Shown here piece by piece: positions 9,885 to 64,000 of a DNA stretch of 64,000 bases (positions are counted from its first letter, which is position 1; each line of letters opens with the position of its first letter). The DNA is from Chlorokybus atmophyticus (lineage: Eukaryota; Plantae; Mesostigma and Chlorokybus algae): NCBI GenBank assembly GCA_009103225.1, contig RHPI01002411.1, positions 1 to 64,000 of the forward strand, read 5' to 3'. The translations under genes and the position numbers were made by a program. The notes under the pieces are model-generated. The model worked only from the letters and a program-made list of their open reading frames with translations. It was not told the DNA's origin and did no database searches.

Positions 9885-10383
9885 NNNNNNNNNNNNNNNN
9901 NNNNNNNNNNNNNNNNNNNNNNNNNNNNNNNNNNNNNNNNNNNNNNNNNNNNNNNNNNNNNNNNNNNNNNNNNNNNNNNNNNNNNNNNNNNNNNNNNNNN
10001 NNNNNNNNNNNNNNNNNNNNNNNNNNNNNNNNNNNNNNNNNNNNNNNNNNNNNNNNNNNNNNNNNNNNNNNNNNNNNNNNNNNNNNNNNNNNNNNNNNNN
10101 NNNNNNNNNNNNNNNNNNNNNNNNNNNNNNNNNNNNNNNNNNNNNNNNNNNNNNNNNNNNNNNNNNNNNNNNNNNNNNNNNNNNNNNNNNNNNNNNNNNN
10201 NNNNNNNNNNNNNNNNNNNNNNNNNNNNNNNNNNNNNNNNNNNNNNNNNNNNNNNNNNNNNNNNNNNNNNNNNNNNNNNNNNNNNNNNNNNNNNNNNNNN
10301 NNNNNNNNNNNNNNNNNNNNNNNNNNNNNNNNNNNNNNNNNNNNNNNNNNNNNNNNNNNNNNNNNNNNNNNNNNNNNNNNNNN
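9885..10383. other. Assembly gap (N run)
   Basis: Run of N; single N joins also at 9313, 9453 and 9720. Confidence 1.
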
Positions 10384-10395
10384 GACATTCAAGCC

Positions 10396-13062: not shown

Positions 13063-13104
13063 CTACAGGAGCAAGCGTTGGAGGTCAAGCTGCTCGCGTG
13101 GGAG

Positions 13105-13528
13105 TGTTGAGAGTATTCCTACATACGATCAGCATCGACCCTCCACACAGGAGTAGAAGGTCGTAAGGACGAGCACTAGGTCCGGACTTAGCAAGATGGC
13201 ATCGTCGGACCAGACTCCGGACTCCAGACTGGAGCCTTACTAACTGCTTCGTATCTCCGCGTATACTTACTCATATTAGGCGTGTAAGAGCTTGTTGGAA
13301 AGCTCTGGTTGTAAGAAAGACAACGCAGCTTAGAGCGCGTCAAAAGGCTGAGTATAGCTTACGCAGTGCTTGCAAACGTAGACGTGTGTGTAACTGGCTG
13401 GTATAAGAACCAGCGGACAACTTGTAATAGATGAATGTGATGTGACTTGTGTATGCTCTGGTGGCGGTAGCTCTGTCTCTGTGTATCTATGCTTGCCTCA
13501 ACTACATGTGCATGCTAGTCCTTCAACA
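13105..13528 (+). repeat. Copia family A LTR (central, shared)
   Basis: 424 bp, preceded by PPT and followed by PBS. Confidence 0.95.
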
Positions 13529-13655
13529 GGTTATGGGCCCACACTACGCTTGAGGAGTGTGAGACTAGCTTGTGTGCATAGTAGTTCTACACTACGGTAG
13601 CTTGTTGGTAGCAGAGCCTTGGGTGTCAACTGCAAGAAAGGCAGGCTCGACAGAA

Positions 13656-28000: not shown

Positions 28001-28682
28001 GATGATGGGAATGGCATAGCATGCTGCTTTGCAACCAGGCATGGTTCACAAAGTGCACCTGATGCATTCTTGAGTTCTTCAGTGCTGAGATGGATGCCCT
28101 TGACCATCTTCTCAGCGACAAGGCGAGTGAGGTTGACGTAGCTGAGATGCCCGAACCTTCGATGCCACAATGTTGGCGACGCCTTGTCCTTCACCATCAT
28201 GGCTTGGATGTTAATGTTCTGAGGGTGCTGCTCCACGTGGTAGAGCCCTCCCGGATCAGCGATTCCAACCATGTGCACGACCCCATCAAGGATGACTGTG
28301 CAGCCACCCTTCCGAAATAGGATCTCCGCGTCTAAGCGCTCCGCAACCCTCACAGAGAATAGACTCGCAATAGCCTTAGGAACATGCAGGACGTTGCGTA
28401 ACAACACCTCGCGTAGTGTGGTACCAACCTTGCACTGGAGTCGTACGTTGCCAACTCCCTCAGCCACCAGTACTTCGCCACTGAAGCCCGCCACCTTGAT
28501 TGTGGACGTCAGCTTTCTGTAGCCCTCCATCACCTCCTTGCTTGGTGTGAGATGACGATCGCAGCCAGAGTCCACCACCCAGAAAGCTGTGCCCGCCTTC
28601 GAACTGGATGCAGTGAAGGCGACATGTTTCTCCTTGTGTTGGTGCTCGTTGCCGCTGTTGCTGGTGCTCGCACTAGGTTGCC
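25067..28682 (-). mobile_element. 5'-truncated Copia family A element
   Basis: 3' LTR 25067-25491, PPT and pol; identity to the other copies stops at 28682, just after the gag knuckle region; no 5' LTR or TSD found. Confidence 0.92.
25534..28578 (-). CDS. Copia pol (protease-integrase-RT-RNase H), 1014 aa open
   Basis: Nearly identical to 13656-17540 from VVDSGC onward. Confidence 0.95.
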   Translation of the reverse strand: MVDSGCDRHLTPSKEVMEGYRKLTSTIKVAGFSGEVLVAEGVGNVRLQCKVGTTLREVLLRNVLHVPKAIASLFSVRVAERLDAEILFRKGGCTVILDGVVHMVGIADPGGLYHVEQHPQNINIQAMMVKDKASPTLWHRRFGHLSYVNLTRLVAEKMVKGIHLSTEELKNASGALCEPCLVAKQHAMPFPSSSSSSQRPCELVHMDVCGPMRIVAKGGVRYFATLIDDYSKLSIIFPLTLKSEIAGAVRTVVALLETQSSNKMKAMRSDRGGEYINKELKEFFASKGIRHETTAPYTPQQNGAAERLNRTLLERVRAMLNDTKMEDSLWKEAVLTANYIRNRSPVSSEQKTPWEHFYGATPDVSGMRVFGCTAYALVPKQLRHKLEPVSKKGIFVGYEPGSKAYRILLEDTQKIIVSREVVFHEGLSQPEAGFFPEDEAQPEHPETVEATGKAIIDDKGEQDSTVADKQSHLQQEHAARRYPVRERKAPDFLHKAHVASVQNEEPSTYEEALLAPDAEQWQRAMDEEIASLHANNTWSLEQLPQGVKTIPVKWVFKVKRDGQGNIERYKARLVAKGFLQQEGVDFNEVFAPASKHTTFRALLAMVAAEDLELHHLDVKTAFLYGELEEEIFIEQPPGYEEGERGTACKLIKALYGLRQAPRMWHIKLTKELEALGFTASSADPGLFIHADNKVWLLVYVDDIIITARQVHHLQETKLALQQAFSVRDLGEAKWFLGMVIERDRAARTIKISQEQMVRRLVTKFGLTEAKTKTTPLALGTALIKAKDEEVLDKAQYPYGELVGSMLYLAVCTRPDVAHAVGVLARYMSAPSMEHWRAAKGVLRYVAGSATVGIKFGSGSTELEGYCDSDFAGDLNSRRSTTGYVFKLNGGVVSWNSRLQPTTAASTSEAEYMAAAAAVKEALWLRKLMADLEHPMACIVINCDNQGAIKLLKHPIASARTKHIDVMHHFVRDRVTRKEVEFQYCNTEGMLADFMTKPLSPLKFKTCCAGLGICV

Positions 28683-29985: not shown

Positions 29986-32900
29986 GGCAGGCTACAGTTG
30001 ACGCGCAGACATTCTCTCGTTAAGCTACTCCAAGAACTCCAAGATTATAGGCAAGGTCAGCAACATCGCGTCAAATATTGAAGTGATGTTAACTTCACGG
30101 AGAACTGTAGCCTCGCGCAGAATGCCAGTGTAGTGTGCATCCGCGTTGTGGTAGATATTAAGGAGATTAGCCAGCAAATCCTCCCAGCCTTGAAATCCCT
30201 GTCCACCTGGTCTGCTGCGCTGATGCACATCCCTGAGTTTGATTGAGCGCTGCATGAAGTGATGTTGCCATGCCGCACCCCCTGTAAACCCGATGGTCCA
30301 GCCGGCAAGCATCTGGGACAGACCACCAGCCAGCACGTCGTCACGCTCGCAACTTCACAAGTTTACAAAGTTGTTCGTCACCAGGCGTGCCCATTCTCGA
30401 ATGGTGTTGATGAAGTCATGCGCACGGTGACGTTGAAGCTGCTTGCGTTATTGTTGAAGCTGATCCTGCAGCTGCTTTTGTTGCTGTTGCGCTTGCTGCC
30501 GGTGCTGCTGAAGCTGTAGCTACAGCTCCCACAGATGAGTCCATTGTTGTTGCGGTAGTTGCGGGAGCTGTTGTTTGAGATGGTCTACGTCATCGTGGAG
30601 GGCTTCCTTCTTCGTCTTCGATGATTGTACTTCCCATCTGCGCAATCGTACTGGTCCAGCAGTCTTCTAATGTCGCTTGAAGGCTGTCCAATGCCTCTTG
30701 TCTAGACCGCTCGAGTGCAGCGAAAAACTCCTTAAATAGCATTTGCAACCTGTCAACGTCTCTTTGCGTCTCCCCCAACTGTTGCTGCACCTCTCCCATC
30801 TGCTTCTCTGCTCGCTCTGCTCACACTATCACTTTGTTGACAGCCCCAGTGTCAATTTACGCATGCCCCAGCTGTTGCTCCAACTCTCGCTTGCGGGCTC
30901 GCACCTCGTTCAACTGCTTCTCTGCTCGCTCAGCTCTGTCTGTCATTGCATTGACAATCTAAGTGTTTACAGCCTCTGTAACAGGTTGCGCCGCTTGCTG
31001 CTGCAGCTGGAGTAGCTATTCCCTTGTACGTTGCAGCTCTTCACCACCTTTGGCCTCCTGACTTGAGGAGGATTCAAGCTGCTGCACCCGTTGCAACAGG
31101 CTGGCATTGCGCTGATGGTACTTGTGAAGCACCGCGTCGATGGAGCGCCAAGGGTTCTCTGCCTCTGCCGCTATGGTGGTCATTGTTGCATTTAATGCTG
31201 CAACTTGCAGCTGTGCCTGACGCAACCGCCGGCGCAGACTGTCGACCTCCTCAGCATTTGACTTCGCTGCCAACTCCATTTGCCGCCGCAGCTCCTCAAC
31301 ATTGGATGCCGCTCCCTTTGCTACAGTTCCTGCAGCTGCTGCCGCAGTAGTTTTTCTTCACGAGTGTAGTTGTCAGCCAGCAGCCTACGCTGCCGATGCG
31401 ACTCCTCCACATTGTTGAGAGCACGTTCAAGTTGCTCTTTGCGCATATTATTGAACTTGCGCAAGGACTCCTGCAAGACCGTGTGACTAGTCTGTGCCCG
31501 CTCGTTGGCATCCTGCAGCAGCAAAATAAAAAATGAGTCCACACACAAGCCACTGAAGCATTCCCAACATGCATTAAACTCTGTGATAGTCATCAACGCA
31601 AACCATTGAGGACTGTCATTAGTTTGTGCCAATGCGGGCGCCAACCGTATGCTGCAAGCCCTTGTTGACAGCCCACATAAACCAACAACTACTATCAAGT
31701 GTGTATAAACCGTACCTTTGCTGCAGATGCCACGTTTTGCACGGCTTGCAATACAGAGCCCAGGTCGGCGGCGTGCACGCTATCGGCTTCTTGCATCTTC
31801 ACAAGCGCCTTAGGCTCAGCGCCGGGAGTCAGGTCTTGGGTGACATTTGCAGAGGTAGAGGCGGCTGGCCCTGCGGCGTTCTTGGTGTGGGCGTATTTGC
31901 TGGTGGTGTCGGACCTGCGACAACTTTTCGCAGACGTTCTCCGGACGAAGAGCCTGACAGCTGCAGGGTTGACAGCTGCAAGGTCCCGGTAGGGGTGGAC
32001 TGACCAGTTGATAGCGTGGACAATTGTGGAGTTTCTTGTGTGGCTGCTGGCAGGTTCTGGCGCTGCTTTTTTGATGGTGGTGAAGTAAGAGGAGGGGGAC
32101 CTTCTGTTCTCCTGGCAGGTAGCTTGAGACTGTCAACACGTGGAGGGTCTGGGGCTGGCGTTCTAGTGCCAGCTTGTGTACTGGTACTGGGGGGAGGTGC
32201 CGGTGGGCCATGGGGATTGTGAGGGGGACTGTGAGGGGGACTATCCTTTGGCCTGTTAGAGTGCATGGGCCTTGGACGCATGTTGGCGCGCCCGAGCCAC
32301 GTCCACAGGGGATGCGACTTAATCTCTGTATCACTCATGGGGTTCACAGGTTCAGGCCTAGCAGACACCGCTTGAGCCGCAGTGGAAGGCTCCGTCATGG
32401 CTTCCAATGCACGTGCTGCATCAGCCTCCTCCTTCTTCTCCTCGTACTCAACCTGCTCGTTGACGATGACATGCAGCGCGTCTTGCATCGTCTTGGAGGG
32501 AAACTTCTTCCAGCCTTTGTGAAGAATAGCCGTTATCTTCTTCTCCCAATGCTTTTCCCTTTCCTCCCGCTGAAGTTCAAGCGATACAGCCTGCCGGGTA
32601 AAAGCTTTCTTTGTGGCAGCCAGGCTAAGTGTCCGAGCTTGGTGCGCCTCGACAGTCTTGGTGTAGATGGCGGCCATTTTCTCCTGCAAACACTCGCACC
32701 AAGTTAGGGCTCTGTGTGGAATGTTTGGCGGCCTACATGGCAACGTATACTGGTACGTACACTAAGCAAATTTCTTGTTTAATCTGTAGCTCCAAGTCCC
32801 TTATGACTTGTCTGTGGTCGTCTACTTGTCTGTTTGCTGCCTCTTTCATTTCATGGGCAGCGTCATGCACAGCTTTATAGAAGTGAACAGATATTTGGCG

Positions 32901-33342
32901 CTGAACATGAGCTTTCGGGTCTATCTGTTGATGGACGTGCATACTCTATTGGTTGTTGGCATGCAATGCGCGGTGCAGTTCGATTTGCATGCCAACAGCA
33001 GCCTGTCAGAAGGGACTGACAATGTATATGCACTGCCTCGCTACAAGAGTACATAACTTACCATTGTTTTGGTGCGCTTCAGCTTGACAAGAGGGGGTAA
33101 GCAACCGCCTTAAATACGCCCTGGCACTCTAGCCCGGCTCCCTTAGCGCATTGCTTGTTACAAGCCACATAGCGTCCTCCATGGCCAGCCCCCAGTTATA
33201 TACGAATTTGTGCGCAACATCTTCCGTTCTCCACAGTTGGGTCTGCATCCAAAAGGCCAGTCAGTATTCTGTATCAAATTAACAGTCTGCATTGACAGTC
33301 GAACATGGACAGTTGCCTAACAAGCAAGCTAACAAGCATGCA

Positions 33343-33870
33343 TCAACCACTTACTCTGTCTATCTGCCCATCAGGTGGCCCACGAAAAGGGTCATAGTCC
33401 AGTAGTAGCTCCTCTACTGCCTGTATGTCCTTGATCGCATACACAGTAACAGCTGGCTTGCCGGCGCCATCGAAGTCCGACCAGAGCCTGGCGTTGGGCT
33501 CATGTCGTTGCCCGTGTACGGAATTGATGTAAGCTGCCACATTGCCAGTGCGGGGGTGGCCATCGATGACAACCTGATATTTGTTGGGTGTGTTTTGCAG
33601 GAACAGGTTGACGTGATATCGTCTGTGGTGTTGAAAGCCAGTTGTTAGCTGGCAACTGCGAAAGACATCCCGCTGCTCTTGGTATGTGAACCATTTGCCG
33701 TCGCATGGCATCACGTTCTCCTCTGCAAAGATGTACACAGGTCATCAGTCATAAGCACACAGGTGTACATACAAACACAACGTGCGTATACACGTGCACG
33801 CACCATTTGCTATGTCCTGGCGGGCGAACAGTCCCAATCCAACACCAGTAATTGTGGAGTCCTTGATATC
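33343..33870 (-). pseudogene. SET domain (lysine methyltransferase fold)
   Basis: GxGLFA N-terminal motif, GNxAx[YF]IN, PN and ELLxDY C-terminal motifs. Confidence 0.88.
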
Positions 33871-36979: not shown

Positions 36980-39900
36980 TTAGCAGTCTAGGTCGTCAAT
37001 GTCTAACTGTTCTACTAATTCCACCCAGTCTTGTGCATTGGCTGCATTTGTCTCCCAATCCCCACTACCTGCTCTGTCATCTTCTGCGTCCTCAGCAGCT
37101 TCCATTTCTGGGCTGTGTTCTTCTGCCTCTGCCTCGTCTCCAGAAGTTTCGGCTTCCCCCTCGCTGGAGGAGGAGGACGAATCTAGGTCATACATGCTGT
37201 CATCGTGTTGGGGCTGACCCTGCGTTGTGGGCATGGATGGTGTTGTGGGTTCTGTTGTGTCAGCTGGTGCCTGGGGTTTGTTCCTGTTGTTGCAAGTGGT
37301 GCACTTGCAGCTGTTAGTACACGGAATCCCTGCGCGCTTGCAACGGCATTGCTTGTTGCTGCACGATGACTTCGAACAGCCGCAACCCTTCAATAGAAGA
37401 AGCCGCCGTCCTCGCGCTGCAGTCATGTTTTCAGGTGTGTCCAGGTGTGCAACCCACACATTGTCCTGCTGTCTGAAACCATGATCTGATAACGGTGCTG
37501 TCATCAGGTGCTGCCTAGGAGCTTGAAGCCACATCTTGACCACCCAGCATGCACGCTTGCAATGCAACAGCAGGGCTTCAACTGTTGGCATTCGGTCATC
37601 TTCCTTCCAGATGGTATGCCATGTTGCATCGTGGATTGCGGCCAACCACTGGGTGAGTGTTGGGATATCATGCTTGCTGGCATTGGCACCACAGGTGTCA
37701 TGAAACAATGCTGTTGGGCTGGGACACTGGAAGTGTCTTGCGTGTTTCCTAAAGTAAGCACACCCAAGCAATCGCAGCAGCATTGCCTCTGGTGTCTGCA
37801 GTGCCATGTCTCGGGTGAGGAAGTCTGCGTCAGTACCTGCTACGGTTTGCCATAGCCACACCTTGCCCATGCCAGCAATGTAGCTCGTGTAGTCGCTGCC
37901 AGTGGCAGCAAAAAACAGCATGATGTAATGTCCAATGTCCTGGCTGGGCGTGTGCGTCAATTGTTGTTGATGTGTTAAGTCCGACAGGAGTTGGTTGAGT
38001 TGGATGAAATGTGGACGGGTGGATGATGCTCTTTCACGGCTGGTCTGGACGGTGACTACTTTGGACTGCAGCATACCTTGCTGCATTGCAGCCAACCCGA
38101 TGATGGTGATGTCGGTGTCAGGTGAGTAAATCACCACCCTGTCACAAGTGCTGTTTTCTGCATGAAACCACACCCTACTGTCTGCTTCGCAGTGGTTGCA
38201 CTCCAACGTAGAGTCTTGGCTGATGCTCACTTGATCTCGAAGGCGTTGCAGCACGCGGGCACCATGTCGGTATTGCATGTGGTCGCTGCCTCCAGACAGA
38301 ATGAGCTTCTGGCCGTTGCGCAGCCATGCAGCCGCATAGGTGGGCAAGTGTTCTGTGATGAATGAGCACAGCTCACGTTTGGCACTTCTGTTGTTCAGCA
38401 GCTGGGGCCACCTCGCTGGGAGTGCCTTTTCTAATCCGATCACAATCTTGTCTGTGTCACCAACATGAGCGCCATCTCTTCTGGACTGAAGGCTGGACTT
38501 GACGCCAGTTGCATGGTTGGGGTCGTCAAACACGATATGTACTTCTCGGATACTGTCAGCAGCAAAGCGAGGGCGCAGGTGGTTCCTGACCAGCTGCTGA
38601 AGGTAGTCTCCATAGTTGCTGATAGTGTCTGCGGGTGCTTGTTGTATGATGAACATGCCCTCAGTGATATAACACTCGGTGCCTGCAGGGAAGTGTTCTG
38701 CGCAGGCTTCTGGACTGCACTCAGCAAGCTTCCCAAGGAAAGCAGCCTTGCTACCCTTCCTCATGTTGCCTTCAACGTCAAAGAGCGCTCGAGGCATCTC
38801 CAGGTACCTCGCAGTCAGGTGTTCTCCAGGCATGTCATTGGATGCGAGCTTTCTCATTACTTGTGCATGGTCCTTGGCCACCCTTCTAGCAGTTCTGGCA
38901 CTATTGCCTTTATTGCTTATACTCGCCATCGTTCTAAGGTTGTTGCGCTTGACTTTAACCACGCCTTGGTTGCTGCAATACTTTGCTTGCACGTAACCCC
39001 TAAATGCCTCGACCCCAACTCTGTGATGTCTACCCAAGTCAGCAGCAGCACCAGGTTTGGCTGTGACATCCCGCACCAAGTGTCGCAGCTCCATGTCATG
39101 CTCAACCATCAGGTGAGCGGCGCTGTTGATGGTTTCAGTCATGTGGGTCACCGTGCTTAGTGTCCGCTTGTAATCGAACTCTGGGAGTGGCCTGGGGGGT
39201 GGTAGCACTTGCTGATCAAAGTTCTTCATGCTGGCAGCACGCGTTGTCAGGTGTAGAGTCTTGCGGCGTAGGTACTCCTCGCTGGGTCTGCTGATGCACT
39301 GCTTGAGGTCGCGGTTGATCACGATTTCATGCGCCTCGTCGCAAGCTACGCTCGCAGCCCAGCGCCCATTGATGGACACTGCAAAGTGCCCATCATCAAG
39401 AAGTTGCAGCACACTCAAAGGCCATGTTCTCAGGTCTGTCAGATGACTGCTGAACACCCTTTGATAATGTGGCCTGTCCCAGGCAAATGCAAGTGGAGCG
39501 AGCATCTTAATGGATGCACAACGCAGCTGCCAGTCACTGGTTCTGGTGGCAAAGTACAAAGCCACATAAGGTAAACAGTCACGTTGCGTGAAGTGCCACC
39601 AGAATGCCCATGTGCTGTCCCTCTCTGCTCTTGCAGAACCATATGCCAAAAACTCTGTGTAATAACTGATGGCTGCACTGTCGCTCGTGCTTGGCTGAGT
39701 GTTCAATTGCTGCCTCTCCAAGAATCGCTGGTAGTGGTCAGAGGCCTCAAAAGCGTCAAGCTGTGCACGGAACACAGCTTCAAAGCCCTGCAGGAGGAAG
39801 GAGTTGTTTCGCTTCCAGTTCCTCCCATCCACCAGAGCATTACGGGCTGTTGAATTGGCAAACCCAGCGCTTGGGGCCAGGCCATCCAAGCCAGCGTCAA

Positions 39901-42900
39901 AGAAGATCTTCAACACCACAGGCTGCATGTTGAACAGCACATGCCAGTCACCTATCATTGGGAGAACCCAATCCCAAAAGCCGGGCTCCAAGGCCTTGAT
40001 CTCCAGAATGAGGGCATATGTCTTCTGATCTCCCGCTATCATCATGCAGGTCATGCCAGATGGCTCTAACACTTTGGCTTGTATTTCAGCAAGTGCCAAT
40101 TTCAGATGGTCGCGCTTGTCCGGATTAATTGGCAAGAGGGGTAGGAAGTGAATGGATGAGCGAGGGCGGGCAGCACACAGGCGCAGCGCAGCGTATTCAT
40201 GCTTGAGGGTACGTGACTGCTGGCCTGTTTCTGCACGCCTCCCCTTGATTGCTTGAAATAAGTTTATGTTGAAGAGGTCCAGTGCTGCTTGCTCTGCATC
40301 ACTCAAGTACACCACCAGGTCCGGAGAGGGCAGCGGCACAAATCTTCTTGGGGCACTCACCATTGGCCGCTGAGGGTCCAAGTCCATTCTGACTTGGATG
40401 CCAGCCTCTCTCAAGGTACGCCATCTCACAGGCTGCCAATATCACCCATGTCAATTGCCATTAGGCACTCGTACACACATGCATTCATACTCAGAACCAC
40501 CGTTGCAGTGCTGACCTTGGCAGCGCTGACGTCTGGCTGGAAATCTCGTTGTTCTTGAGGCCATGTAACGACTGCCTGTGTGGTGGTACAGTGCATGCCG
40601 GTGGATGACTCCTTGCCCATGAACATAAGTGTGTGAGATTGCTGAAAGTCCAGATTGTCTATACTGCACATGACCAGTTCGTTGTGGTGCAGGCCAAAGT
40701 GAAGGGGTGCAGTTGCCAAGGACATGGTTCGCGTGGTCACATGCCTATGGGATCCACAGCATGTATGGTAAGTTGCCATTCAGTCAGCGATATGCCCCTA
40801 ATCACATACAAGTTGCATTGCAACAGGCCTGGCTGACCTGTTGAGCGTGTAGCGGCTCACACATAACCCTAGTCGGTTCAGCATGTGAATCAGTTTGGGT
40901 TTGGCACCGCACCCCTCCACATAGTTTGCCAGGACCAGGTGCAACTTGGAGTATGCCTTTGGGTTGCGCGCATAAATTGCATTAGCATACAACACTGCTG
41001 TCTGACTTCTCATGACTTTCAGGCGATCCTTGATGTTTTCATCGTCACATCCAGCTCGCGCAGCCGCTCTTTCCGCAGTCTCTAGTCCAGTGATGGCCTT
41101 CAACACCGTGACGACATCCTCTTGTCCATCATCCAACTCTTGCCTCATGTCCAAAGACCGCCAATCAGGCGTGCCTTCTGCGTTAGTCTTAGTCCTGGCC
41201 ACTGCAGCTTGTTGCACACACTTGCTGAGATGCCGCAGCAGCACGCCATTGACAACCCCTTCGCTTTGCGTGGGGGTTCCACCTGACTCTTTCAGTTTGC
41301 GCAGGACCCAGCCACCATACACAGCCTTCGCCAAGGCACGTCCGTGATCGGTACCCCGCACCAGCAAGACTGTACCTAGCCTTGGAGATCCAGTCAGAAG
41401 CTCCAGAGATGTACCAAAGGCCCGCTGCAGTGCGACAGACAACATCCTGGAGGTGACTCTAGAGCGCGATGCCAATTCTTGCAGCAACACAGCGCCATCT
41501 TCATCTTGCAAGTCTCTCGCCACTACTCTGCAGGCCTCTGCAGTAGGTCCCTCCTCGACTAGCGCATCTGCCACCTCCCTAATCTTTGTGACTGACTCCC
41601 GCCACAACCCAGAGTTGTATGCAGATTGCCCACTACCACTTCGGCGCAGCCTGTTCTGCATATCTAGCAACTCTTTCTTGTATTGATCGATCATTGACCT
41701 GCTAGCTGTGAGCTGTTCACTTGCACGTGTACACTCAAGCCGGCACCTTCCTAATTGACTATGTAGAGCACATACATCCTCCACACTTTTGGCCAACTCA
41801 GCTTTCACATTCTGAGCACGCACATACAAGCATGTAAGCTGCGTGCTTTGCCATATGAAACATCACTTTCACTTGCACTGTATTACCTCTTGTTGGCTGC
41901 ATGCATCAGTCAAGGAGTGCTGCAACTGCTCCACATTGCACGCTTGTTCACACATGATTAAACGCAAACTGCATGACTCCGTAGTAGCCTCGTTGCACAT
42001 GCGTTGCCACTCTGCACACCTATCGCAGACATGCCCATCTGCATTGCCTGCACAGCACATGCAATGTCAAATGAAGCACACAGATTATCAACATCCAGCG
42101 CGTTACAGTGCACACCCTAACACTAACTACACTACATGCCTGATCCCCAATGGCCGCTAGAATGCTGCTGGGAAGACTGCGATTGATGCAAGTTGGTGCG
42201 CTCTCCTAGAGGGGCTCTAGGAGTGAAAGGTGGACCCATGTCGGGTGTGAAGCCAACAGAACCAAGAGGGACAGTTACCTCCACATATTGACCCTGTATG
42301 CAACATAATTATAACATCAGCCACAACACAGTATCACAGCAATAGCAACTACCCAAAATCTACTGCAGTCTCAACACCCTCTCCAACATGCACTTACAGC
42401 GTCATTGCGTATCATCACTTTCTGGAACCCATGTGCCCGCCCTGCCGCACTAGGAACTGGAGTCTGAGGAGTGACTCCACTCATAGTTGGCAGCGCTGCA
42501 GGGACTGATGGACGCTCAACAAAGTCACCCTGCAACATACATTTGCCACATTAATTTCAGTGATCACATCCCACGCCTCCATCAAGCCACAAAGCTCCCA
42601 CAATCATAGCATGACCCACTATCACAATGCAACAACTACACGCACAACATACACACCTCGACTTGTTGGAAAGTGTCGTTACCCTTGTCATACCTCCATT
42701 TCTTGCCACTGGTTATTGCATTAAACACCACATGGTAGGGCAAACAAGTATCATGCAAGCTACAATCACGCCGGAGAGCATGCATCATGTTGTCCTCCTT
42801 CTGCTTGGCGGCCACCCTAACAGCCTTCTGGTTTTCCGCATGCTTCCTCTTCTTCTTGTTCTTCGCCTCAGTCCCAGGAGAGGTACTGGCCTCCGTGCCA

Positions 42901-47700: not shown

Positions 47701-49675
47701 TAACTGCTAGAAGAGGATGATGGGAATGGCATAGTATGCTGCTTTGCAACCAGGCATGGTTCACAAAGTGCACCTGATGCATTCTTGAGTTCTTCAGTGC
47801 TGAGATGGATGCCCTTGACCATCTTCTCAGCGACAAGGCGAGTGAGGTTGACGTAGCTGAGATGCCCGAACCTTCGATGCCACAATGTTGGCGACTCCTT
47901 GTCCTTCACCACCATGGCTTGAATGTCAATGTCCTTAGGGTGCTGCTCCATGTGGTAGAGCCCTCCCGGATCAGCGATTCGAACCATGTGCACGACCCCA
48001 TCAAGGATGACTGTGCAGCGACCCTTCCGAAATAGGATCTCCGCGCCTAAGCGCTCCGCAACCCTCACAGAGAATAGACTACCAATAGCTTTAGAAACAT
48101 GCAGGACGTTGCGTAACAACACCTCGCGTAGTGTGTTACCAACCTTGCACTGGAGTCGTACGTTGTCAACTCCCTCAGCCACCAGTACTTCGCCACCTTA
48201 ATTGTGGACGTCAGCTTGCTGTAGCCCTCCATCACCTCCTTGTTTGGTGTGAGATGACGATCGCAGCCAGAGTCCACCATCCAGAAAGCTGTGCCCGCCC
48301 TCGAACTTGATGCAGTGAAGGCGACATGTTTCTCCTTGTGTTGGTGCTCGTTGCCGCTGTTGCTGGTGCTCGCACTAGGTTGCCCCTGTTGTTTCTTCCT
48401 ACAATCCTTCACAATGTGCCCCTTCCAACCACACCAGTGGCATGTGAGGTCTTTGTGACAAGGATTGCCCGGCTTGTTGCCCTTGTTCTTCTCCTCATGG
48501 TTGCTCTTCTTCCCGTGCTTGTTGGTGTGGAAGGCCACGGCATCAGCTTGCTCGTCCTTCTTCATCACCCTCTGCTCTACGGTGAGCAGCTTCGGTAGTA
48601 CATCGTCCAGCATCAGCTCCGATGACAATGTCTCCAGCAGTGTTGCAACGACCTCGTACTCTGCTGGTAGCCCTGCAACAACAGCCAGCACAACCTCCGT
48701 CTCCCCCATGTCGTGGCCGACGTTGATAAGGTCCGCCCACAGCTCTCTCGCGCGTGCAACATACTTTGTGATGGGTTCTGCTGCCTCCTTCCTGAGTGCA
48801 CTCAGCTGCTTGCGTAGCTGCAACTTTCTGGCGTTGTTCGTGGCTCTGAAAACGGCTGATAGCTTTTCCCAAGCTTGTCTACCATCTTCACATGCAGTGA
48901 GCATGGGAAAGTGATGCCGTTTGCAGTTCAACACAAGCAAAGAGTGTGCTTCTGAATGCTCTGACCACACAGTGTTCGCTTCTGGTAGTGGTGGTGGTGC
49001 CTTCGGATCAACGTACTTCCACATCTTCTTGTGGATGAGCAAGGCCTTCATCTCCACACACCATGTGTTGTAGTTGTCAGTGTCCAGCTTTGCAATCTGC
49101 CCCTTGTCGTAGGTCGCCTCCACTTCTGTCGAGCCTGCCTTTCTTGCAGTTGACACCCAAGGCTCTGCTACCAACAAGCTACCGTAGTGTAGAACTACTA
49201 TGCACACAAGCTAGTCTCACACTCCTCAAGCGTAGTGTGGGCCCATAATATGTTGTAGAACTAGCATGCACATGTAGCTGAGGCAAGCATAGACACACAG
49301 CGACAGAGCTACCGCCACCAGAGCATACACAAGTCACATCACATTCATCTGTTACAAGTTGTCCGATGGTTCTTATACCAGCCAGTTACACACACGTTTA
49401 CGTTTGCAAGCACTGCGTAAGGTATACTCAACTTTTTGACGCGCTTTAAGCTGCGTTGTCTTTCTTACAATCAGAGCTTTCCAACAAGGTCTTACACGCC
49501 TAATATGAGTAAGTATACGCGGAGATGCAAAGCAATTAATAAGGCTCCAGTCTAGAGTCCGGAGTCTGGTCCGACGACGCCATCTTGCTAAGTCCGGACC
49601 TAGCTGCTCGTCCTTACGACCTTCTACTCCTGTGCGGAGGGTCGATGCTGATCGTATGTAAAAATACTCTCAACA
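44780..49675 (-). mobile_element. Full-length but decayed Copia family A element
   Basis: LTRs 44780-45203 and 49251-49675; TSD CAACA on both sides; mutated PBS; gag-pol broken into fragments; start ATG reads GTG. Confidence 0.95.
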
Positions 49676-54737: not shown

Positions 54738-56299
54738 CACAACACTGCGTGCGCGCACACACATGTGCCGCGCGCAACAACTAGCGATAGCAACAACAAG
54801 CAAGGAACTCAACTCACCTGTTGCGTGCCGCCGTCTCCCGCCCTGTACGGGATCTGCTGGTACAGCTCCTGCAGCTGAACAAGCAAAGCAAACTCGTCCT
54901 CTATGGGTGTGACGGTACCTTGGCCCAACAGACCAGTAGCCTGCACCTGAAAGTGCTCAGCCCACTTGGGGCCATAGTCGTGATAGATGGCGATCTCGTA
55001 CTATATTTGAGTTACGACAGACATCATAGGAGCCTCAAAAACAACCCCAAAGCGATGATCTCATCAGCACGCGAGCAGCTTGTGCTCGCGTGCTGGGAGC
55101 CTGAAGTCGCGATCGAGCTTGTTCCATAATGCCCATTGCACCGTGGCTGTGGTGAGCTTGCGCAAGGTGCCATCGGCTGCACGAAGCTCACAGTTAGTAC
55201 ACTGACAGCAACGCATTTAAAGGATGCCAACACGTGCAAGATGTGCACATAACTTGAACAACAGATGACATGGTCAACCTGAATGACGCTTACAAGAGCG
55301 CATTCAGGTTTTCAAATAGATCAGCTGATAATCAATTTTATTCTAGCCTTATCCGTCCAGCTGCGCACCTGCTGCAGGCAGCTTGCAGTGCAGTAAAGTG
55401 GAGTGGGGTAGAATCGGGTCCGGCTTTTGTAACCTAATGCGATGGTTACAATAGCAGCACCCGACTGCATAGCGGCCGCTCGAGTATCTGACAGGTTCAG
55501 GGCTGGTCGCGCCCCCTGTGGCCTGCGAATCACACCTGCACTAATACAGCAAGGTCCAGGTGCTGTGCTACAAACCTGGTCCGTATGCAGCCGTGTCATG
55601 GGACCAGGTACATTGCACCACATCGCCTGTCTTTGGTACAATTGTAGCAATGACCGAACCTGTCTGGCATGATTGGGGCGCGGCCTTGCACACGTCAGCA
55701 CAGCGTTAAGTACGCACAGGGCTTTTTACGCGCGGACCAGTCGTACGCGGCCCGTAGACCACGTCTGGTACGTTGTAGCGTACCAGTGCCGCGACTGGTC
55801 CGGCATGATCGGACCACTGGTGGTCCGGCCCCGGAGCCCGCCGATATGGTCCGAATGACCGGACCAGGGCTGGTGGCGTGTCCCGCGGCTTGTAGACCGG
55901 TACAGCACTGGTCAGCACGCGGCCTGAGCAGTAGGACCAAGGCTGGTCGCATGCCCTGCGGCCTATGAGCCAGGGCAGCACTGGTACAGAATGCATGTAC
56001 TGTACGGACCAATTATGTCCTCACAAGCGGGACCAAGCTGCACTGGTACGGTTGCAAGCGGCCCTCATAGACCATGCATGGTTCCGAAACCGAAACAGCA
56101 CTCAACAACTCAACAGCTCTTTTGAATCATTGATATATTATGATAACCAACGGTGAAGAATGACGTCGGAAGCATACGACACATCTCACCAAGGCCGTTG
56201 CTCCCAAGGTCACGTGCGCCAATGCTAAACGAGTAGCAGGCACTGGGCATGCATGGTCCCCTGTCCATTTGCTAGGGTTTTGGGCTTGCGCTGCAGTCT

Positions 56300-56337
<38 letters not shown>

Positions 56338-56389
56338 GCGAAAACCTTTGGAACAGCTGGTTTCGTGGGTACTACGCATGCACCCAGCA

Positions 56390-58930
56390 TGGCGGACCGA
56401 AAAGCAGCTGATATTGCTGAAAGACTCCACCAGTCTATCGAACTCAAGCTACCTGCAGTCAACCTTGCAGCTTTGCGCAAGCGGAAGCAGCGTTCCAAGT
56501 TGGTTGTTAACGCAACGCAAGGTCTCCTACGTCAGAAGGACTTGGAGTTGAGTCAAAGAGAGCAAGCTCTTGCCCGCAGAGAAGCTGAGGTGTCCCAACT
56601 TTTGGCTGATAGCGGCCTCGCTGGTGACAACGCGTCCCCCATGGAGGTGGATGGGCAGGCAGACCCCTCACTCAGGTAACATCCTTGCCCCCACTAGCTA
56701 GCTTTCAAGCCTCATTGCGACACAGCCAGCACAGATTTCTTGACAGCAGTTGTTAAGCGCCTAATATGACTCCCTGCAGGCCAGCTTCAGCAACTCAGCC
56801 TGCTGCTCACCCCCCTGCAACCGCTGGCCAGCCATCCACTTCGCATTCCCCTCTGTCACCGGCTGCTGAAGCTGGAGGTGGCTCATTCGCCGACGAGTCA
56901 TCTGATCATGTGGAGAGCCAGCAGCAGCAGCAGCAGCAGCAGCAGAATCGTCAAGTTATCTGCAACTGCAGTTCCAGTGGATGCCGCGGCATGGTAAGCA
57001 GTGCGGTCTATGAGTTATGCAATCTATTGCTCTGACCGAAAGTCTCATAGGCACTGTCCAGTGTCTACGAGTCATGCACTCCATTGCTCTGACCTAAAGT
57101 CTCATAGGCACTGTCCAGTGTCTACGACTTATGCATTCCTTTGCTGAGACCTAAGGACTCATAGGCACTGGACAGTGCCAGTCTGGTCTATGACACAGCC
57201 ATGCACGCGTGTGTCTTGCTTGTGATTCTTGATAGCGTGGTGATGTGGATTGGTGTTGATCGCTGGCGTGCTAACCAAGATCTGTCATCATAGATGGTAG
57301 ACGAAGCAGTTGCAAGGGCGCACCGTGCACTTGACCTGGCAGTTGCCGCAAGCAAGTGGGCACCACCTATTCCCCATAGTCAACCTCTCGAGCCCAGCCA
57401 ACCACCATTGGAGTCTGCTACGAAGAAGTGGCTGGATATCTACCTAAAGATTGTGACAGCCCTGGAAGATTCTGGTGTCCAGGTTGCTCTCGTCAACGAG
57501 ATTATGAAGCTCATCTTTGGCCAGATAAATTCTGTGGTCAAGCTGGCCTTGGAGGTTCCTTTTGAACAGGAGCAGTGGCGGGATGACATCGCCAGCCTTA
57601 TAGGCGACACAATATCGCACAGCCCTGTCGCGGATGAGCCGCCGACAGACATTGCCGCCGTGGATAAACTGTTGGCCGCGCTCGGCATGCCTGTTCCTCA
57701 GCGCCTGACCGTCGATCCCACATGCAAGTACTTGTTTGATGCACCTTATCCCACACTCAATGAAGATGACGAAGACTCGGACACGAGCGAGACCAAAAAA
57801 TGATTGATCGCCTTCGCAACACACCGTGCGGAGGGGGATGCGGCAGGGTTCGCAAAGAATGATGCGACTTCTTGTACAATCGTATAGGTGCCTGGCTCAG
57901 CGCCAAGTTGGCTGTCCCTTCAATCGCTCACGACTATCTGGAGGAATGGCGCCACAAAGATGAGTGGTTGCACGTCCCTGTGGAACAAGTACCTGCTGCA
58001 AACACTGAGTACTGGCATGGTGCGAAGAAGCAGCATCACTGCAGCTTCTGGGACCCTCGCCACAAAATCAAGCTGCCTGTGTCCTGCGCATTCTGCCACC
58101 ACATCCCGGATGTCGATTTGGAGCATCACAACGCAGGCGATCACGTGACATTTGAATGCTCAGGGTGCCACAAAACCAACCATCAGATGGTACAGCAAGC
58201 TCTTGGCGACCCTCGCAACATAGCCCTGCTAATCCACGCCGACGGCTTCAGCTCAACAACCACTGTGAAGCACAGCTGCACCGTTGTCAGTGCCTCTGTG
58301 CTCAATGGTGGGAAGCGCATTTCCTCACAAGAGTCTTCCGTCATGCCTTTGCTCTTTGTTCCCACTGATCAGATCCCAAACGGTGTGGACAGTCTGGAGC
58401 CCTTTCTGGAACCACTGGTGCGTGACCTGGAGAACCTCTACTTGAACGGCTTCACTGTTCGTTATGGCCTCGATTCCAATCATGTCGACTGTTGTGTGCT
58501 TGATCGACGACCAGGTAATGACTGGGTTATAACATGTTTTGTCACCTATATCACCCAAAGTCTCATAGGCACTGTCCAGAGTCTACAACTTATGCAGTCC
58601 ATTTTTGTGTATGCTAAAGTCTCATAGGCACTGTTCAGTGGCTGCGACTTGGTTATAGCATATCTGCCTTCTTGCGGTCTATGAGACTGTCATAGGCTGC
58701 ACTGCCCAGTGCGGCCTATTACAGTCTCTATCAGACTGGTTGTGAGATACTGATGTTGACTTCATTGCAGGTCAAGAGATAACGCTGCGGGTAGTGCTGT
58801 GGGCATGGACGGGTGACCAGCCAGCGCAATGTGAGATAGGCCAGTTTAAGAGTGGAGGCCTCGTCCCCTGCCGGCGTTGTCTCCTCAAAGCCACTCAGCA
58901 CCAAGTGCCCCGGCGTGTGTCTGCATCATA
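56390..58930 (+). pseudogene. EnSpm/CACTA (Transposase_21/Plavaka-like) transposase, multi-exon, frameshifted and C-terminally truncated
   Basis: NIALLIHADGF, LEPFLEPLVRDLENLYLNGF, intron, RVVLWAWTGDQPAQCEIGQFKSGGLVPCRRC; frameshift near 57800 and a stop near 57860. Confidence 0.75.
57005..57190. repeat. Intronic 57-bp tandem repeat x3
   Basis: AGTCTCATAGGCACTGTCCAGTGTCTACGA units at 57041, 57098 and ~57155; two more copies at ~58560 and ~58618. Confidence 0.88.
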
Positions 58931-59184
58931 GACCAGTTCGGATAACTGCGCCTTGCAGACAACTATGTGCACTGTGCGCGTGTGCATGCGACTGCATGTG
59001 TGATGGCCGAGCAAGCAGGGCAAGCAATGAACATGTAATGGCAATATATTACAATATACACTTATGCACATCTGTTCTGCAGGCTATGTACACTGAATGG
59101 ATGCCTATAAACCCAGCCTGCAGCTGGACTATAAGCAACCTGAAGTAGGTACCTGGGTGCTACTGACTCAGTCTATAGGCCATA

Positions 59185-62100
59185 CTAGGGTGGTGGTGGT
59201 GGCGGTGGTGGTGGTGAGTGTCTGCTCAAGTAGTAGCCGATCAGGTTATGATAAATGGCTTTGGTGTAGTGTGGGCCCAGGTGCATAACTTCCCGTTGTG
59301 CCGCAGTGAGGTGTGTATATGATCTGTTCGCCATGTTCTGATCAAGCAGAAGCAAAAAGTGAGTGAGGCCCGGCTGCAGAGCACCAAACGCCTCCAAAGT
59401 GTTGGCGTACAAAGGGAGCCCATTCTCCGCTCGCCGTTGATTGATGTCACGGAGGTAATGGTGCGCTGTGTTTCGGATCAAAACACACAGTGCAGCAGGA
59501 TCACTGTCCCAAGTGTCTCGTGTCGCTTGATTGTTCCTCTGCGCCCAGGCATTGCGAGCTTGTATGCAGACCGCAAGCTCTGGAGCCATCAGCTGTTGCA
59601 AACCTTGCAAGTACTGTTGTATGCGCTGGGTAGTCTGTGCTCCTCTTTCGCTCAACGAACGTGCCCGCGCGCCGGGACTTTCAGCCAGGAAGTCCTCCAC
59701 CACAACCCGCATCCACTCATCAACCAGCACGCCTTCCATGCGAATTTGCTGTTTTTCAACGAGCTCCAGGTCATCTTCTAAGTTCGTGACCCGCCTATCA
59801 AGTTGATTGTTCTCCCTTTGCTGTTCAATGATTTTCTCTTGCAGTTCAGCTTCTGGCGGTAGTGCGGACGTGGAAGGAATGTCAGCAGCTCCACCACCTG
59901 GCATTACAGTCTGCAGCATCTGAAGCGTTTCCTCGAGCCTCTGCTGGGTATCTTCGAGCAGCTTCTCTGTATGACTGACACGCTGCATGGCTTGAGCAAC
60001 GTTTTCTTCCGATTCTGCCAGGTCCGCCTGCGCCTTCAGGATTTCCGGGTCGTCCATGGTGGCTGGTCGCTTGCCGTCTTTGATAAGCTTCTTATTGGAC
60101 TTCTGGAGTTTGGCATTTTCCTGACGCAGGCGTTTCACCTCCGCATTCAGGGCGTCTGCTTGCCTGCTTGCCTCTGCTTGCAGCTTGCCCCCAGTCTCTT
60201 GCGTTTGAGAGGCCAGCCGCTGGAGTTGTTTGTTGAGAGACTCCACTCTTGCTTCGAGGCGGTTCTTCTCAGCAGTCAAAGATTCAACCTCTGTTTGCAA
60301 CCTCTCTTGCGCCTGTTGAGAGGCCTTCCCGAGTTTTTCATTAAGAGACTGCACTGCTGCACGGAGCTTCCTCCTGGCCTCCTCGCCTGTGCGCAGGCGC
60401 TCGCGCAGGCTCTCATTGTCCTGCCGTAGGCTGCTCGCCTGCAGCTTCTTCCTGGCCTCCTCGGCTTGGCGCAGGCGCTCACTCAGTTGCAAGTTCTCCT
60501 CTCGTAGGCGGTCCGCCTCTTCACGCACCTGCTGAGCGGAGGACTCCTGCTGCTGCTGCTGGCCGCTGCTCTCCTCCAGCTTCTTCCTGGCCTCCTCGCT
60601 TTGGCGCAGCCGCTCAGTCAGGCTTGCATTGTCCTGTCGTAGACGGTCCGCCTCCTCAAGCGCCTTCTGCTGAGTGGACACCTCCTGCTGCTGCTGGCCG
60701 CCGCTCTCCTGCTGCTTCTTCCTGACCTCCTCAGCTTGGCGCAGGCGCTCACTCAGTTCTGCATTTTCCTTTTGTAGGCGGTCCGCCTCCTCACGCGCCT
60801 GCCGCTGGAGGGAGGCCATTTGCTGAAGCTGGATTTGGAGTTGAGAGGCCTCCTCGGCTTTGCGCGCAGCGTCACGCGCTTGTTGCGAGGCCTCCTCGGC
60901 TTTGCGCAGGCGCTCCTGCAGGCTCTGGATCTCCTCCAAGCGTGCTGCTGCTGATCCTTTGAAGCTGCTCCTCGCCTGCCGTAGGCTCACATTCTCTGTT
61001 TCCAAGCGTTGCCTCTCCGCATTGGTCCACCTCAACTGGTGCTGAAGCGTGTCTTCCTGCTGCTTCCGAATGGAGTCTTGGTGTGACTGCTGACGCTGAA
61101 GTCTTGCATTAAGGGCGTCAACCTCTGCTTGGAGCTTTTGTGCTTGCGCGGAGGGCTGCTGCTGAAGCTAGTCAAGAAGGTTCCACTGCTTTTTCCTGGC
61201 CTCCTCGGCTGTCGCCAACTGCTGTCGTAGGCGGTCCCTGTCAGCAGTGGTGGCAACCAACTCTTGCGCTGCATCCTCACGCTGCAAGGCCAGCACCAAC
61301 TCTTCATCCAACTCGCTGATCCTGTTAAAGGCGGCCTTGACGTCATCTTCAATGCGCTTGCAGCGGGTGAGGTGCTCTTTCAAGGCAGGGCGTTCACCGC
61401 ACAGACGTTCAGCTTCTTTCCTCGCCAGCTCTGAACGCCGAGCATTGATTGCTCCCAGCTCTTGCAAAGTTTGTTGTAGCTGTTGTACGCGCTGGCTGTC
61501 TTCTGCTCTGGCCTGATCTTGCTGTTGCAGCCTTTGTCGCTCAGCATTGGCTGCATCGAGAGCGGCCTGCAGCTGTGGTATGCGCCCCACGGCCTCCTCT
61601 CTTTCCTTCTCCTGCTTTGCAAGAGCCACCTCCAGCTTCTGTATGCGCCCCCCGGCCTCCTCTCTGGCCTTCTTCTCCTGTTGCAGCAACTCTGCATGCT
61701 GTTGGCTAGCCTTGGCTGCTGCTTCAGCAGCGGCTGATAACTCCGCTGCATGGATGCGCTTGACATCAGCGCCGGCGGATGCAACGGCCTGGGTGCTTGT
61801 AGACGCCTCTTCTAAGTGTTGCTGCATCGAAACACCAAGTTAGAGCACAAACACAAAACAGCGGGGTCATAGACCGAAATGGACAGTGCGGCCTGTGACG
61901 CACAAGTAGCCATAGACTGACTAATGCTGACTTTGGCCAAGGGTTACCTGAAGTTGGGGCACTTGCTGTTGGAGGTTCTGGACAAAGCCTTCAACCAACT
62001 TGGCTATGTTGCTGGCATTGGCGACTCCTGAACGTGCAGCAGCGATACCGTCTTCCAACTTCTTACGAGCATCGTCGTCGCCGTCACCGTTGCTGTCATC

Positions 62101-63942
62101 ATCGCTGCTTTCATGATCGCTGGGTTCATCACCACTGCCGTCTCCATGATGATCACCTCCAGCAGGTTCATGATGATCACCTCCAGCAGGTTCATCACGA
62201 CCTCCAGCAGGTTTATCACCTCCAGCAGGTTCATTACCGCTGACATGCTGACCCTCAGCAGCACCTCCTGGAGTCCCTCCACCAGTTTGATGGCCTCGGT
62301 CTATGGCATCCTTCTCTGCGCTTCCTTGTGGTGGCCTGTCCGGAAACACTAGAGGAACTGAACGTCGCCCTGAAACCCCTCCCAATGCTGCAAGTGCAGC
62401 AGCAGCAGCAGCAGCAGAGGCAAGAGCAGTATTAACAGCAGCTTGAGAAGGATTGCTAGAGGTAGCCGCAGCACCAGAAGCAGCACTAGAAGGAGTCGGA
62501 CCAGGAGCTGCAGCAGGAATGGATGGCCAAGGATGGTTGCACTCCCACTTGTTGATGAGGTATGCGCGCAAGGACTTGTAATTCTCAGCCCATCCAAGAT
62601 CCTGAAAATGGATGGTCTTCATCTGCTCTTCCAGCCAAACTTCTCGCTTCTGTTTCCTCCGATTAGCAATGGCGTCGATGCGTAGCCGGCGTGTCTCCCA
62701 CTCCGCCTTGTTGCGTTGCTGCAATTGCTTTTGCTCAGCCTGCCACTGTGCAGTCGTATCTTGGGCGTTTTTAACATTGGTGCGCACGGCAGCTATCTGC
62801 TCCTCAGTCAACCAATGTCGCCTGCTTTCATTCAGACCATTGCGCACCATGGACAAAATGGTCTTCTCGATTCTTGACTGATAATCCTGCTCCTTCAGCC
62901 TGTGCTGATTTGCAGCCCGTGTCACCATGGCGCCCTGAGCGGCAATCTCTTGAAGGCCTTTGCGAATTGTAGTCTCTGCCTTACGGAACACTTCCTTGGT
63001 AAGTTTCTGCGAATCATAACCACCAGTTAGAACACGAATTACACACAACTCATTTACGTTTAATAACACAAACATACCCTCTGTTCTTTCTCTTGTTCTA
63101 TTCTGAAGTCTATCTGTCTTAACAGCAGGAATAGTCTATCTAGCACGCGTGTAAGCTCAGCGCACTTGCTTTTAGCTGAGTCAAATATCCCTTTTAAAAG
63201 GCGTACAGACGCCTCTCTGACAGTGTGACTGACTGTGTCGTTCTGGTGACACAAGTGCAGTCTATGAATGCACAATGACATGTACGACCATGCACTGACG
63301 AAGCGTTCTCAACACTTACATTCTGTCTTTGATTTCGGGCGACTTGTGGTCGTTTCAGCACCCTCCATGTGTAGGCGCCTAAAGATTCACCAGCTTGACG
63401 CGGTGCAGTGCAAGCGGCGAGGTACGCGCCGTCTTCGAGCGCGACGCCATGGCGAGCTGCCATCTCTGTTGCCTCCTTGATAAACTTTTCTCTGGCCGCC
63501 TCGAAAAAGTACTCCATGACCTGAGGTAAGATGGTGATCAGCACATTGTTTGCAATGCTGAATGATAAGGTCATAGACCGCACAGCTCTCACAGATGCAG
63601 TCTATAACAGCAGGAGACAGTGTCTGGCAGAGCAAGTGATGTCTATAGGCATGAGCCACAGGCTGCATATACTCACATGGTCTGTAGGTTGCTCGTCTGG
63701 AGGTGGAGGGAAGGGATCGTATTCCATGAGCAGCTCTTCCCCGGCGGCGATGTCACTCTGACTCCTAACCTCAGCTGCCTGCACCGCAGCCTCATCAACG
63801 GAGTCCATGATGTGGCAGTTGGGTTTGTACTGCGTATCGCGGCTGGAGTTGAGGAAGCCAGCTATGTTCCCATATCGAGGGTGGCCATCGATGACAGGGC
63901 TCTGGCGGCGTGGCACGTCCATGATGACCTGCAGGTGGTATC
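59185..63942 (-). pseudogene. Multi-exon SET / coiled-coil / KEN-like gene, paralog 2
   Basis: SET C-half (IDGHPRYGNIAGFLNS..KPN..GEELLMEYD), intron 63521-63676, helical exons, then 61827-59185 continuous except one TAG at 61168-61170; ends with LCVLIRNTAHHY..F...QPGL. SET is cut by the LTR at 63943. Confidence 0.75.
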
Positions 63943-64000
63943 TGTTGAGAGTATTCCTACATACGATCAGCATCGACCCTCCGCACAGGAGTAGAAGGTC
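63943..64000 (+). mobile_element. Start of another Copia family A LTR inserted in the SET exon
   Basis: TGTTGAGAGTATTCCTACATACGATCAGCATCGACCCTCC matches the family A LTR start. Confidence 0.95.

Follow-up and report, generated by a model that had tools for sequence, protein, structure and literature searches.

A decayed SET-domain gene of Chlorokybus atmophyticus, probably cargo of a CACTA/EnSpm-type DNA transposon

Introduction

Which protein was encoded by the gene that runs on the minus strand from position 63943 to 59188 of contig RHPI01002411.1 of the alga Chlorokybus atmophyticus (assembly GCA_009103225.1), and does this protein join a SET domain to a ribonuclease (RNase)? The contig was analyzed over positions 1 to 64,000, and this stretch of 64,000 nucleotides (nt) is called the window below. 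A preliminary description of the window had read the gene as a SET domain linked by a coiled coil to a KEN-type RNase domain like that of Ire1 and RNase L, and had proposed that it couples chromatin writing to RNA cleavage. Our analysis points to a different kind of gene. The locus is probably a decayed copy of a gene that a CACTA/EnSpm-type DNA transposon carried as accessory cargo and that coded for a chromatin factor. That the gene formed a single transcript, was carried by the transposon and had a role in chromatin, we infer from its sequence.

An intact gene would encode one protein of at least 1,470 amino acids (aa), in which a divergent SET domain would be followed by a helical linker, a disordered low-complexity tract, a rod of roughly 700 aa, an all-helical end domain and a poly-proline tail. 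At the element or in its vicinity, the SET domain would deposit or recognise lysine methylation on chromatin, and the rod would act as a spacer or promote oligomerisation. The end domain, which would be small and lineage-specific, would be a module for interaction with protein or nucleic acid.

Gene Structure and Splice Model

By six-frame reading and a search for GT-AG introns, five exons were delineated. Their conceptual splicing yields a product of 1,469 residues with a single break, entered as X. The four introns (75, 77, 71, and 126 nt) are all of phase 0 and keep one frame; their donors are GTGAGT, GTAAGT, GTATGT, and GTAACC, and their acceptors conform to YAG. The parts of the gene and a paralog within the window used for comparison are as follows.

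63677-63943, minus strand: exon 1 (truncated), 89 aa, coding for the C-terminal half of the SET domain and including GFLNSS...PNC and GEELLMEYD; Pfam PF00856, E 5.5e-6; 43% identity to the SET exon of the paralog, E 1e-21
63602-63676, minus strand: intron 1, 75 nt, GTGAGT...TATAG, phase 0; from sequence and frame analysis
63320-63601, minus strand: exon 2, 94 aa, helical, without known family; weak collinear match to the paralog, E 0.003
63243-63319, minus strand: intron 2, 77 nt, GTAAGT...CACCAG, phase 0; from the enumerated in-frame GT-AG introns
63078-63242, minus strand: exon 3, 55 aa; collinear match to the paralog, E 2.8e-5
63007-63077, minus strand: intron 3, 71 nt, GTATGT...TTCGCAG, phase 0; from the enumerated in-frame GT-AG introns
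61948-63006, minus strand: exon 4, 353 aa, helical in its N-terminal part and then disordered, with abundant Ala, Ser, Pro and Gly and with EPAGGD repeats
61822-61947, minus strand: intron 4, 126 nt, GTAACC...GATGCAG, phase 0; holds two copies of the GTCTATG motif of the element
59188-61821, minus strand: exon 5, 878 codons, encoding the charged helical rod, the C-terminal domain and the poly-Pro tail; terminated by the stop codon at 59185-59187
59745-62088, minus strand: charged helical, coiled-coil-like region, about 700 aa, extending across intron 4, with 135-nt repeats at 60412-60832
59215-59742, minus strand: C-terminal all-helical domain, 176 aa, from structure predictions; no sequence or fold match
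59455-59475, minus strand: RNTAHHY, a KEN-like R-N-x2-H-H-Y string matching RNKKHHY of human IRE1
30028-33741, minus strand: diverged, decayed paralog comprising a SET exon, segments resembling exons 2 and 3, a helical region of lesser length and, at the C-terminus, a helical open reading frame (ORF)

The SET domain, the rod and the end domain probably belong to one gene of plausible architecture, because the four canonical introns are in frame and exons 1-3 are collinearly conserved in the diverged paralog. The SET exon of the latter scores 32.4 bits against Pfam, and its exon-2-like segment, which contains a stop codon, and its exon-3-like segment follow in the same order. Alternatively, the element might carry two genes, one for a short SET protein whose end falls within exon 2 or 3 or behind it, and another for the rod and the end domain. 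The joining of SET to rod depends on the splice model, with intron 2 retained a stop is reached at 63197, a long disordered tract lies between the two parts, and homology to the paralog is significant for exons 1-3 and not for the tail. Against two genes speaks that the four best-scoring splice pairs would all keep the frame by chance with a probability of roughly (1/3)^4, about 1 in 81. In addition, neither an in-frame stop nor an obvious start is present between exon 3 and exon 4, and the paralog has its parts in the same order and on the same strand. We therefore regard two genes as a possibility to be taken seriously, albeit a doubtful one.

The proposal that the exons splice into one frame thus holds in so far as an in-frame four-intron model exists, but in the window copy this frame is broken by a TAG codon at 61168-61170 in the last exon. 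A 19-nt GT...AG segment around this codon was considered as an intron and rejected as too short. About 130 nt 3' of the stop codon of the gene, the pentamer TGTAA is found at 59049-59053 on the minus strand. In chlorophyte green algae, TGTAA typically serves as the polyadenylation signal, and its occurrence here agrees with an algal origin of the DNA.

The Adjoining Transposase Gene and the Shared Motif

A fragment of a transposase gene faces the end of the SET gene.

57863-58928, plus strand: fragment of a putative tnp2 (CACTA/EnSpm-type) transposase in two exons, converging on the SET gene; PF02992, E 2.4e-5, below the cut-off

Between the end of the SET gene and the last recognisable exon of the transposase gene lie 260 nt, the two genes being arranged tail to tail. 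The transposase has the database homologs P0003 (E 1.3e-22) and P0004, the latter annotated with PF02992. According to a tblastn comparison with the homolog on contig L001 (positions 397-2897), the transposase is represented here by about its first ~280 aa. Beyond these, the homolog has more than 500 aa to which nothing in the window corresponds. To judge from this comparison, the element copy is a deletion derivative, because its transposase lacks the downstream parts found on L001.

The two genes also have a short motif in common. The motif set TCTATGA / TCATAGA / CTATAGAC / GTCTATAG occurs 14 times in the window, and 11 of these occurrences fall inside 56065-63641. Ten of the 11 are non-coding and are located on the transposase side and in the introns and the 3' untranslated region of the SET gene; the set is also contained in the 57-nt tandem units at 57006-57176. 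The sharing of this non-coding motif suggests that the SET gene and the transposase gene are tied to one element. The repeats may be transposase-binding subterminal repeats that are spread through the element.

In the classic case, a CACTA element codes for a second protein, which is poorly conserved and binds to subterminal repeats. By analogy, the end domain of the SET protein could be a DNA-binding or dimerisation module that functions like TnpA of En/Spm, recognises the GTCTATGA-type motif of the element and brings SET to the chromatin of the element. The concentration of the element-specific motif in the non-coding DNA of both genes (repeat families D6, D8, I12, I13, I18, and I20) and the lack of a nuclease-family match of the end domain would agree with such a function. 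It is nevertheless conjecture: the end domain matched none of the DNA-binding or plant TnpA-like Pfam families and is not especially basic. We consider a TnpA-like function unlikely.

Breaks in the Window Copy and Other Versions of the Gene

Two lesions interrupt the SET gene in the window.

63943-64000, no strand assigned: terminal 58 nt of a copia-type long terminal repeat (LTR; TGTTGAG...), inserted in the SET exon; 96-98% identical to seven other sites of the window, which adjoin copia gag-pol ORFs
61168-61170, minus strand: in-frame TAG breaking exon 5; CAG (Gln) in independent DNA contigs

The LTR junction at 63942/63943 splits the SET domain mid-way and cuts off the 5' part of the gene. 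Among public runs, the only one containing the stretch was a DNA run stored as contigs (X1). The X1 contigs together cover the locus, with about 99.3% identity to it. They carry G instead of A at 61170, hence CAG for TAG, and one of them continues past 63942 into non-LTR sequence with the SET frame staying open. Of the 31-mers of the stretch, a share of 0.77 was found in X1, which is the value expected from one variant version alone; the X1 sample therefore has a slightly different allele or copy. This version lacks the nonsense codon and probably also the LTR. Between the window and X1, 19 codons differ nonsynonymously and 7 synonymously. With a ratio of nonsynonymous to synonymous sites of 3.4, the ratio of the substitution rates (dN/dS) is about 0.8, which gives no sign of purifying selection and is expected of a drifting transposon copy. 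As 21 further contigs match at 80-99% identity and differ in the number of 45-aa repeats, more diverged copies exist as well. The window copy itself cannot make the protein, since the LTR cuts the SET domain, the change of CAG to TAG breaks the rod and the partner transposase is truncated.

The presence of several copies also bears on the question whether the SET gene is an ordinary host gene of a transposon-rich region that was hit by insertions and was never cargo. Copia and other elements crowd the window, the adjoining transposase is a truncated fragment, and a near-identical version of the gene is present at about unique depth in X1, as would be expected of a host gene. Such a gene would, however, have to be reconciled with the other copies at 80-99% identity, with a second, diverged copy that adjoins another transposase-like ORF in the window and with the non-coding motif common to the SET gene and the transposase gene. 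Moreover, a search of 15 billion public proteins yielded no homolog, an uncommon outcome for a chromatin gene of the host. A host origin thus appears very unlikely.

The SET Domain

The SET assignment is based on a match to PF00856 with 27.2 bits (curated cut-off 22.4), which covers profile positions 47-104 of 105. The claim that the gene starts with a SET domain was thereby upheld for the C-terminal half, which is all that the copia LTR has left. When compared with the catalytic SET motifs N-H-S...P-N and E-L-x-x-x-Y, the gene reads FLNSS...KPNC and EELLMEY; the Asn, the Pro-Asn and the Tyr are kept and the His is replaced by Ser. The paralog reads INSV at the NHS position, so that neither copy has the canonical NHS. 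In a phmmer search against the PDB, the SET half obtained no match at E<=0.01. A putative post-SET Cys motif, 'CICESC', was rejected because it is out of frame.

Linker, Disordered Tract and Charged Rod

The SET half is followed by about 300 aa of helical sequence without known family and then by the disordered tract with its Ala, Ser, Pro and Gly-rich composition and EPAGGD repeats. The N-terminal part of exon 4 had no homolog in a collection of 5.8e9 proteins, and, SET apart, no part of the protein had a relative that could be detected among about 15 billion public proteins. The rod consists to 40-60% of E, K, R, D and Q and contains few Pro and Gly residues. It holds 135-nt (45-aa) tandem repeats at 60365-60832, and copies elsewhere in the genome vary in the number of these repeats by skips or duplications of 60-266 nt.

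About 800 aa of heptad-rich coiled coil had been proposed for this part of the protein. A charged helical stretch of about 700 aa is indeed present, but a simple measure of 3.5-residue periodicity was not decisive as to heptads. The composition of the rod fits a coiled coil and a single charged helix alike.

Sequence Comparisons of the End Domain

The C-terminal text quoted in the preliminary description is present, including IRNTAHHY at 59455-59478. RNTAHHY has the catalytic R-N-x3-H spacing and, in the form R-N-x2-H-H-Y, equals RNKKHHY of human IRE1, which in solved structures reads FTSRFPHLLAHTY after a stretch of 20 residues. Translated in all six frames, the window contains a single RN-x2-HHY string. 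Such a string is rare, but was chosen after the fact. The generic HEPN motif R-x4-6-H is also present (R90...H95 of the end domain) and is likely to occur by chance in a domain with, by our estimate, about 12 Arg and 8 His.

Beyond these strings, the searches gave no indication of a nuclease family. In Pfam, no Ribonuc_2-5A (PF06479), HEPN or other family was matched at E<=10. The PADLOC profiles gave no match, and the NCBIfam profiles gave only noise at E 0.02 or worse. Searches of all PDB sequences with phmmer and with hmmsearch using a two-sequence profile returned nothing at E<=10. No IRE1 or RNase L was found by phmmer among 1.84e9 cluster representatives; the two matches obtained there, a tandem-repeat protein and a saposin-repeat protein, were rejected as spurious. 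ESM Atlas features for the end domain scored below 0.9 and indicated no family, and no loci were found in the JGI metagenomes. In a Smith-Waterman comparison of 54 verified KEN residues of IRE1 with the end domain, the alignment comprised 8 residues with a score of 33 (shuffle p 0.047), and unrelated ORF tiles of the window reached a score of 40 in the same comparison.

The end domain also differs from the KEN domain of Ire1 and RNase L in its context. Both are small all-helical domains at the C-terminus with R-N-x2-H-H-Y, but here no profile, pairwise or fold match to KEN was obtained, and about 80 residues follow the motif, compared with about 55 in IRE1 chains (4yz9_A). Upstream of the end domain there is neither a kinase nor a pseudokinase; a SET domain and a helical rod are found in their place. 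The missing kinase does not exclude a KEN domain, because kinase-less KEN domains are known from Oikopleura and monocots, as are fusions of KEN to ubiquitin and BRCT (PMC3710099). For the same reason, the lack of a kinase would not by itself be a novelty.

The paralog is the sole diverged homolog available and is a pseudogene. Its C-terminal ORF is not significantly similar to the end domain (BLASTP E 0.09, tblastn E 3.3), and the alignment is ambiguous. Under either alignment the Arg of the motif is lost, being replaced (HNADAH) in one and deleted in the other, so that RN-x3-H is not retained in recognisable form in this one homolog. With respect to the close version in X1, none of the 40 differences listed, out of a total of 149, changes the RNTAHHY site at 59455-59475. 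In the same DNA run, a more diverged copy reads ILEVFGALQP at 59374-59403, where the window has TLEAFGALQP. The changes amount to two conservative replacements and a synonymous one, a hint that part of the end domain is retained in other copies.

Predicted Structure of the End Domain and the Nuclease Question

A single-sequence AlphaFold2 model of the 176 aa reached a pLDDT (predicted local distance difference test) of 47.7, and its Foldseek hits were noise. For the last 127 aa the pLDDT was 65.4 and the predicted template modelling score (pTM) 0.48. The end domain was predicted to form 6-8 helices, and RNTAHHY lies in a predicted helix. The top Foldseek hits of the 127-aa model were the HEPN toxin HepT of Shewanella and one other HEPN protein, with E values of 1.4-4, a template modelling score (TM) of 0.24 and a root mean square deviation of about 12 A. 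Upon VIA structural re-alignment, the HEPN chains stayed below Z 2. All that an exhaustive VIA search returned were helical bundles of a generic kind, whose Z values did not exceed 6.4, and a structure search of the Atlas gave TM values below 0.45. IRE1 or RNase L chains were absent from the Foldseek results, from the VIA-wide results and from the VIA second-look results. Minimal HEPN toxins (HepT / DUF86, Shewanella SO_3166, PDB 5yep, 6m6u, 7bxo) resemble the end domain in their size of about 130 aa, their helical nature and the R-N-x3-H spacing, but the values of the fold comparison are non-significant and no HEPN match was obtained with PADLOC or Pfam.

Is the C-terminal domain nevertheless a genuine, extremely diverged KEN/HEPN metal-independent RNase, dimerised by the rod, that couples lysine methylation with RNA cleavage? 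The spacing of RNTAHHY, its uniqueness in the six-frame window, its position in a predicted helix, the all-helical nature and HEPN-like size of the domain, and the HepT-type toxins as the best-ranked Foldseek hits (these at E 1.4-2.7) would be in accordance with it. In addition, HEPN domains act as dimers (PMC3710099), and the coiled coil would supply the dimer. On the other side stand the failure to match any Ribonuc_2-5A or HEPN profile, PDB sequence, relevant member of the large library or KEN fold, with HEPN proteins appearing only at E>1, the short alignment to IRE1 that unrelated tiles surpassed, the HEPN chains below Z 2, the loss of the Arg in the paralog and the chance expectation for R-x4-6-H. 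Such an RNase is therefore improbable in our view. We likewise see little prospect that the end domain belongs, as a very diverged member, to the HEPN-type domains, or that it represents a deeply diverged, transposon-borne branch of the HEPN/KEN endoribonucleases on a SET polypeptide. If the latter were true, the element would mark chromatin and would also cleave RNA, such as transcripts involved in silencing. The likeness to IRE1 and RNase L is limited to RN-x2-HHY and probably coincidental.

The assignment of the end domain as a KEN/HEPN RNase was thus not sustained, and nothing was found that supports a role as toxin or addiction module. The preliminary description had itself named the lack of a profile or structural match and the lack of conservation of the motif as grounds for abandoning the nuclease, and this is largely what we found.

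Weighing of the Cargo Hypothesis and Comparison With Known Systems

Several points weigh against a chromatin factor carried as cargo and without an RNase domain. The transcript structure is a splice model built on sequence. The transposase match to PF02992 (Transposase_21) has 24.1 bits and lies under the cut-off of 28.6. The two transposon ends do not both lie in the window, as one of them would be past the LTR insertion and the window edge, and the cargo status is derived from adjacency, the shared motif and copy number. Catalysis by the SET domain is doubtful because NSS replaces NHS. Finally, RN-x2-HHY is a string that seldom arises by chance, and even the better of the structural models is of moderate confidence (pLDDT 65), which leaves a small probability for a very diverged HEPN-type domain.

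SETMAR is the classic SET case of a transposon-linked chromatin modifier. Associations of transposons with chromatin genes, including SET genes, have been catalogued (Grau-Bove et al., 10.1101/2021.11.30.470311). With the chromatin modifiers associated with transposable elements, the gene described here has in common the physical linkage of a SET gene to a DNA transposon and a plausible role in the chromatin of the element. It differs from them in that the SET protein is encoded by a separate, convergent gene and not fused to the transposase, and in that a long rod and an unclassified end domain are added. With CACTA/EnSpm elements that carry a TnpA-type gene, the element shares a putative tnp2-family transposase, a second large gene and a short repeated non-coding motif. 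In contrast to the TnpA-type accessory gene, the second gene here contains a SET domain and has no similarity to plant TnpA families. In the literature searched, we found no description of a SET domain combined with a very long rod and an orphan end domain in a separate gene of a CACTA-type element.

If intact copies are expressed, they would represent another transposon with its own chromatin factor, in an unusual layout, and would bear on the question how mobile elements manipulate or evade silencing by the host. The value would lie in the gene family and not in the locus of the window, as the window copy is dead and the RNase claim unsupported.

Surroundings

Elsewhere in the window, copia elements and further transposon ORFs are crowded together, with no fewer than four gag-pol ORFs of the copia type at 9377-17540, 25534-28578, and 48065-49207. 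An assembly gap (a run of N) follows position 9884. Near-identical LTR ends are found at 8513, 9827, 13105, 17583, 25433, 45146, 49618, and 63943. Upstream of the paralog and on the same strand, a 1,149-aa ORF at 36980-40429 (minus strand) contains DUF6589 (E 1.5e-9) and a Tesmin/TSO1 CXC domain; a second transposase-like gene thus adjoins the second SET copy.

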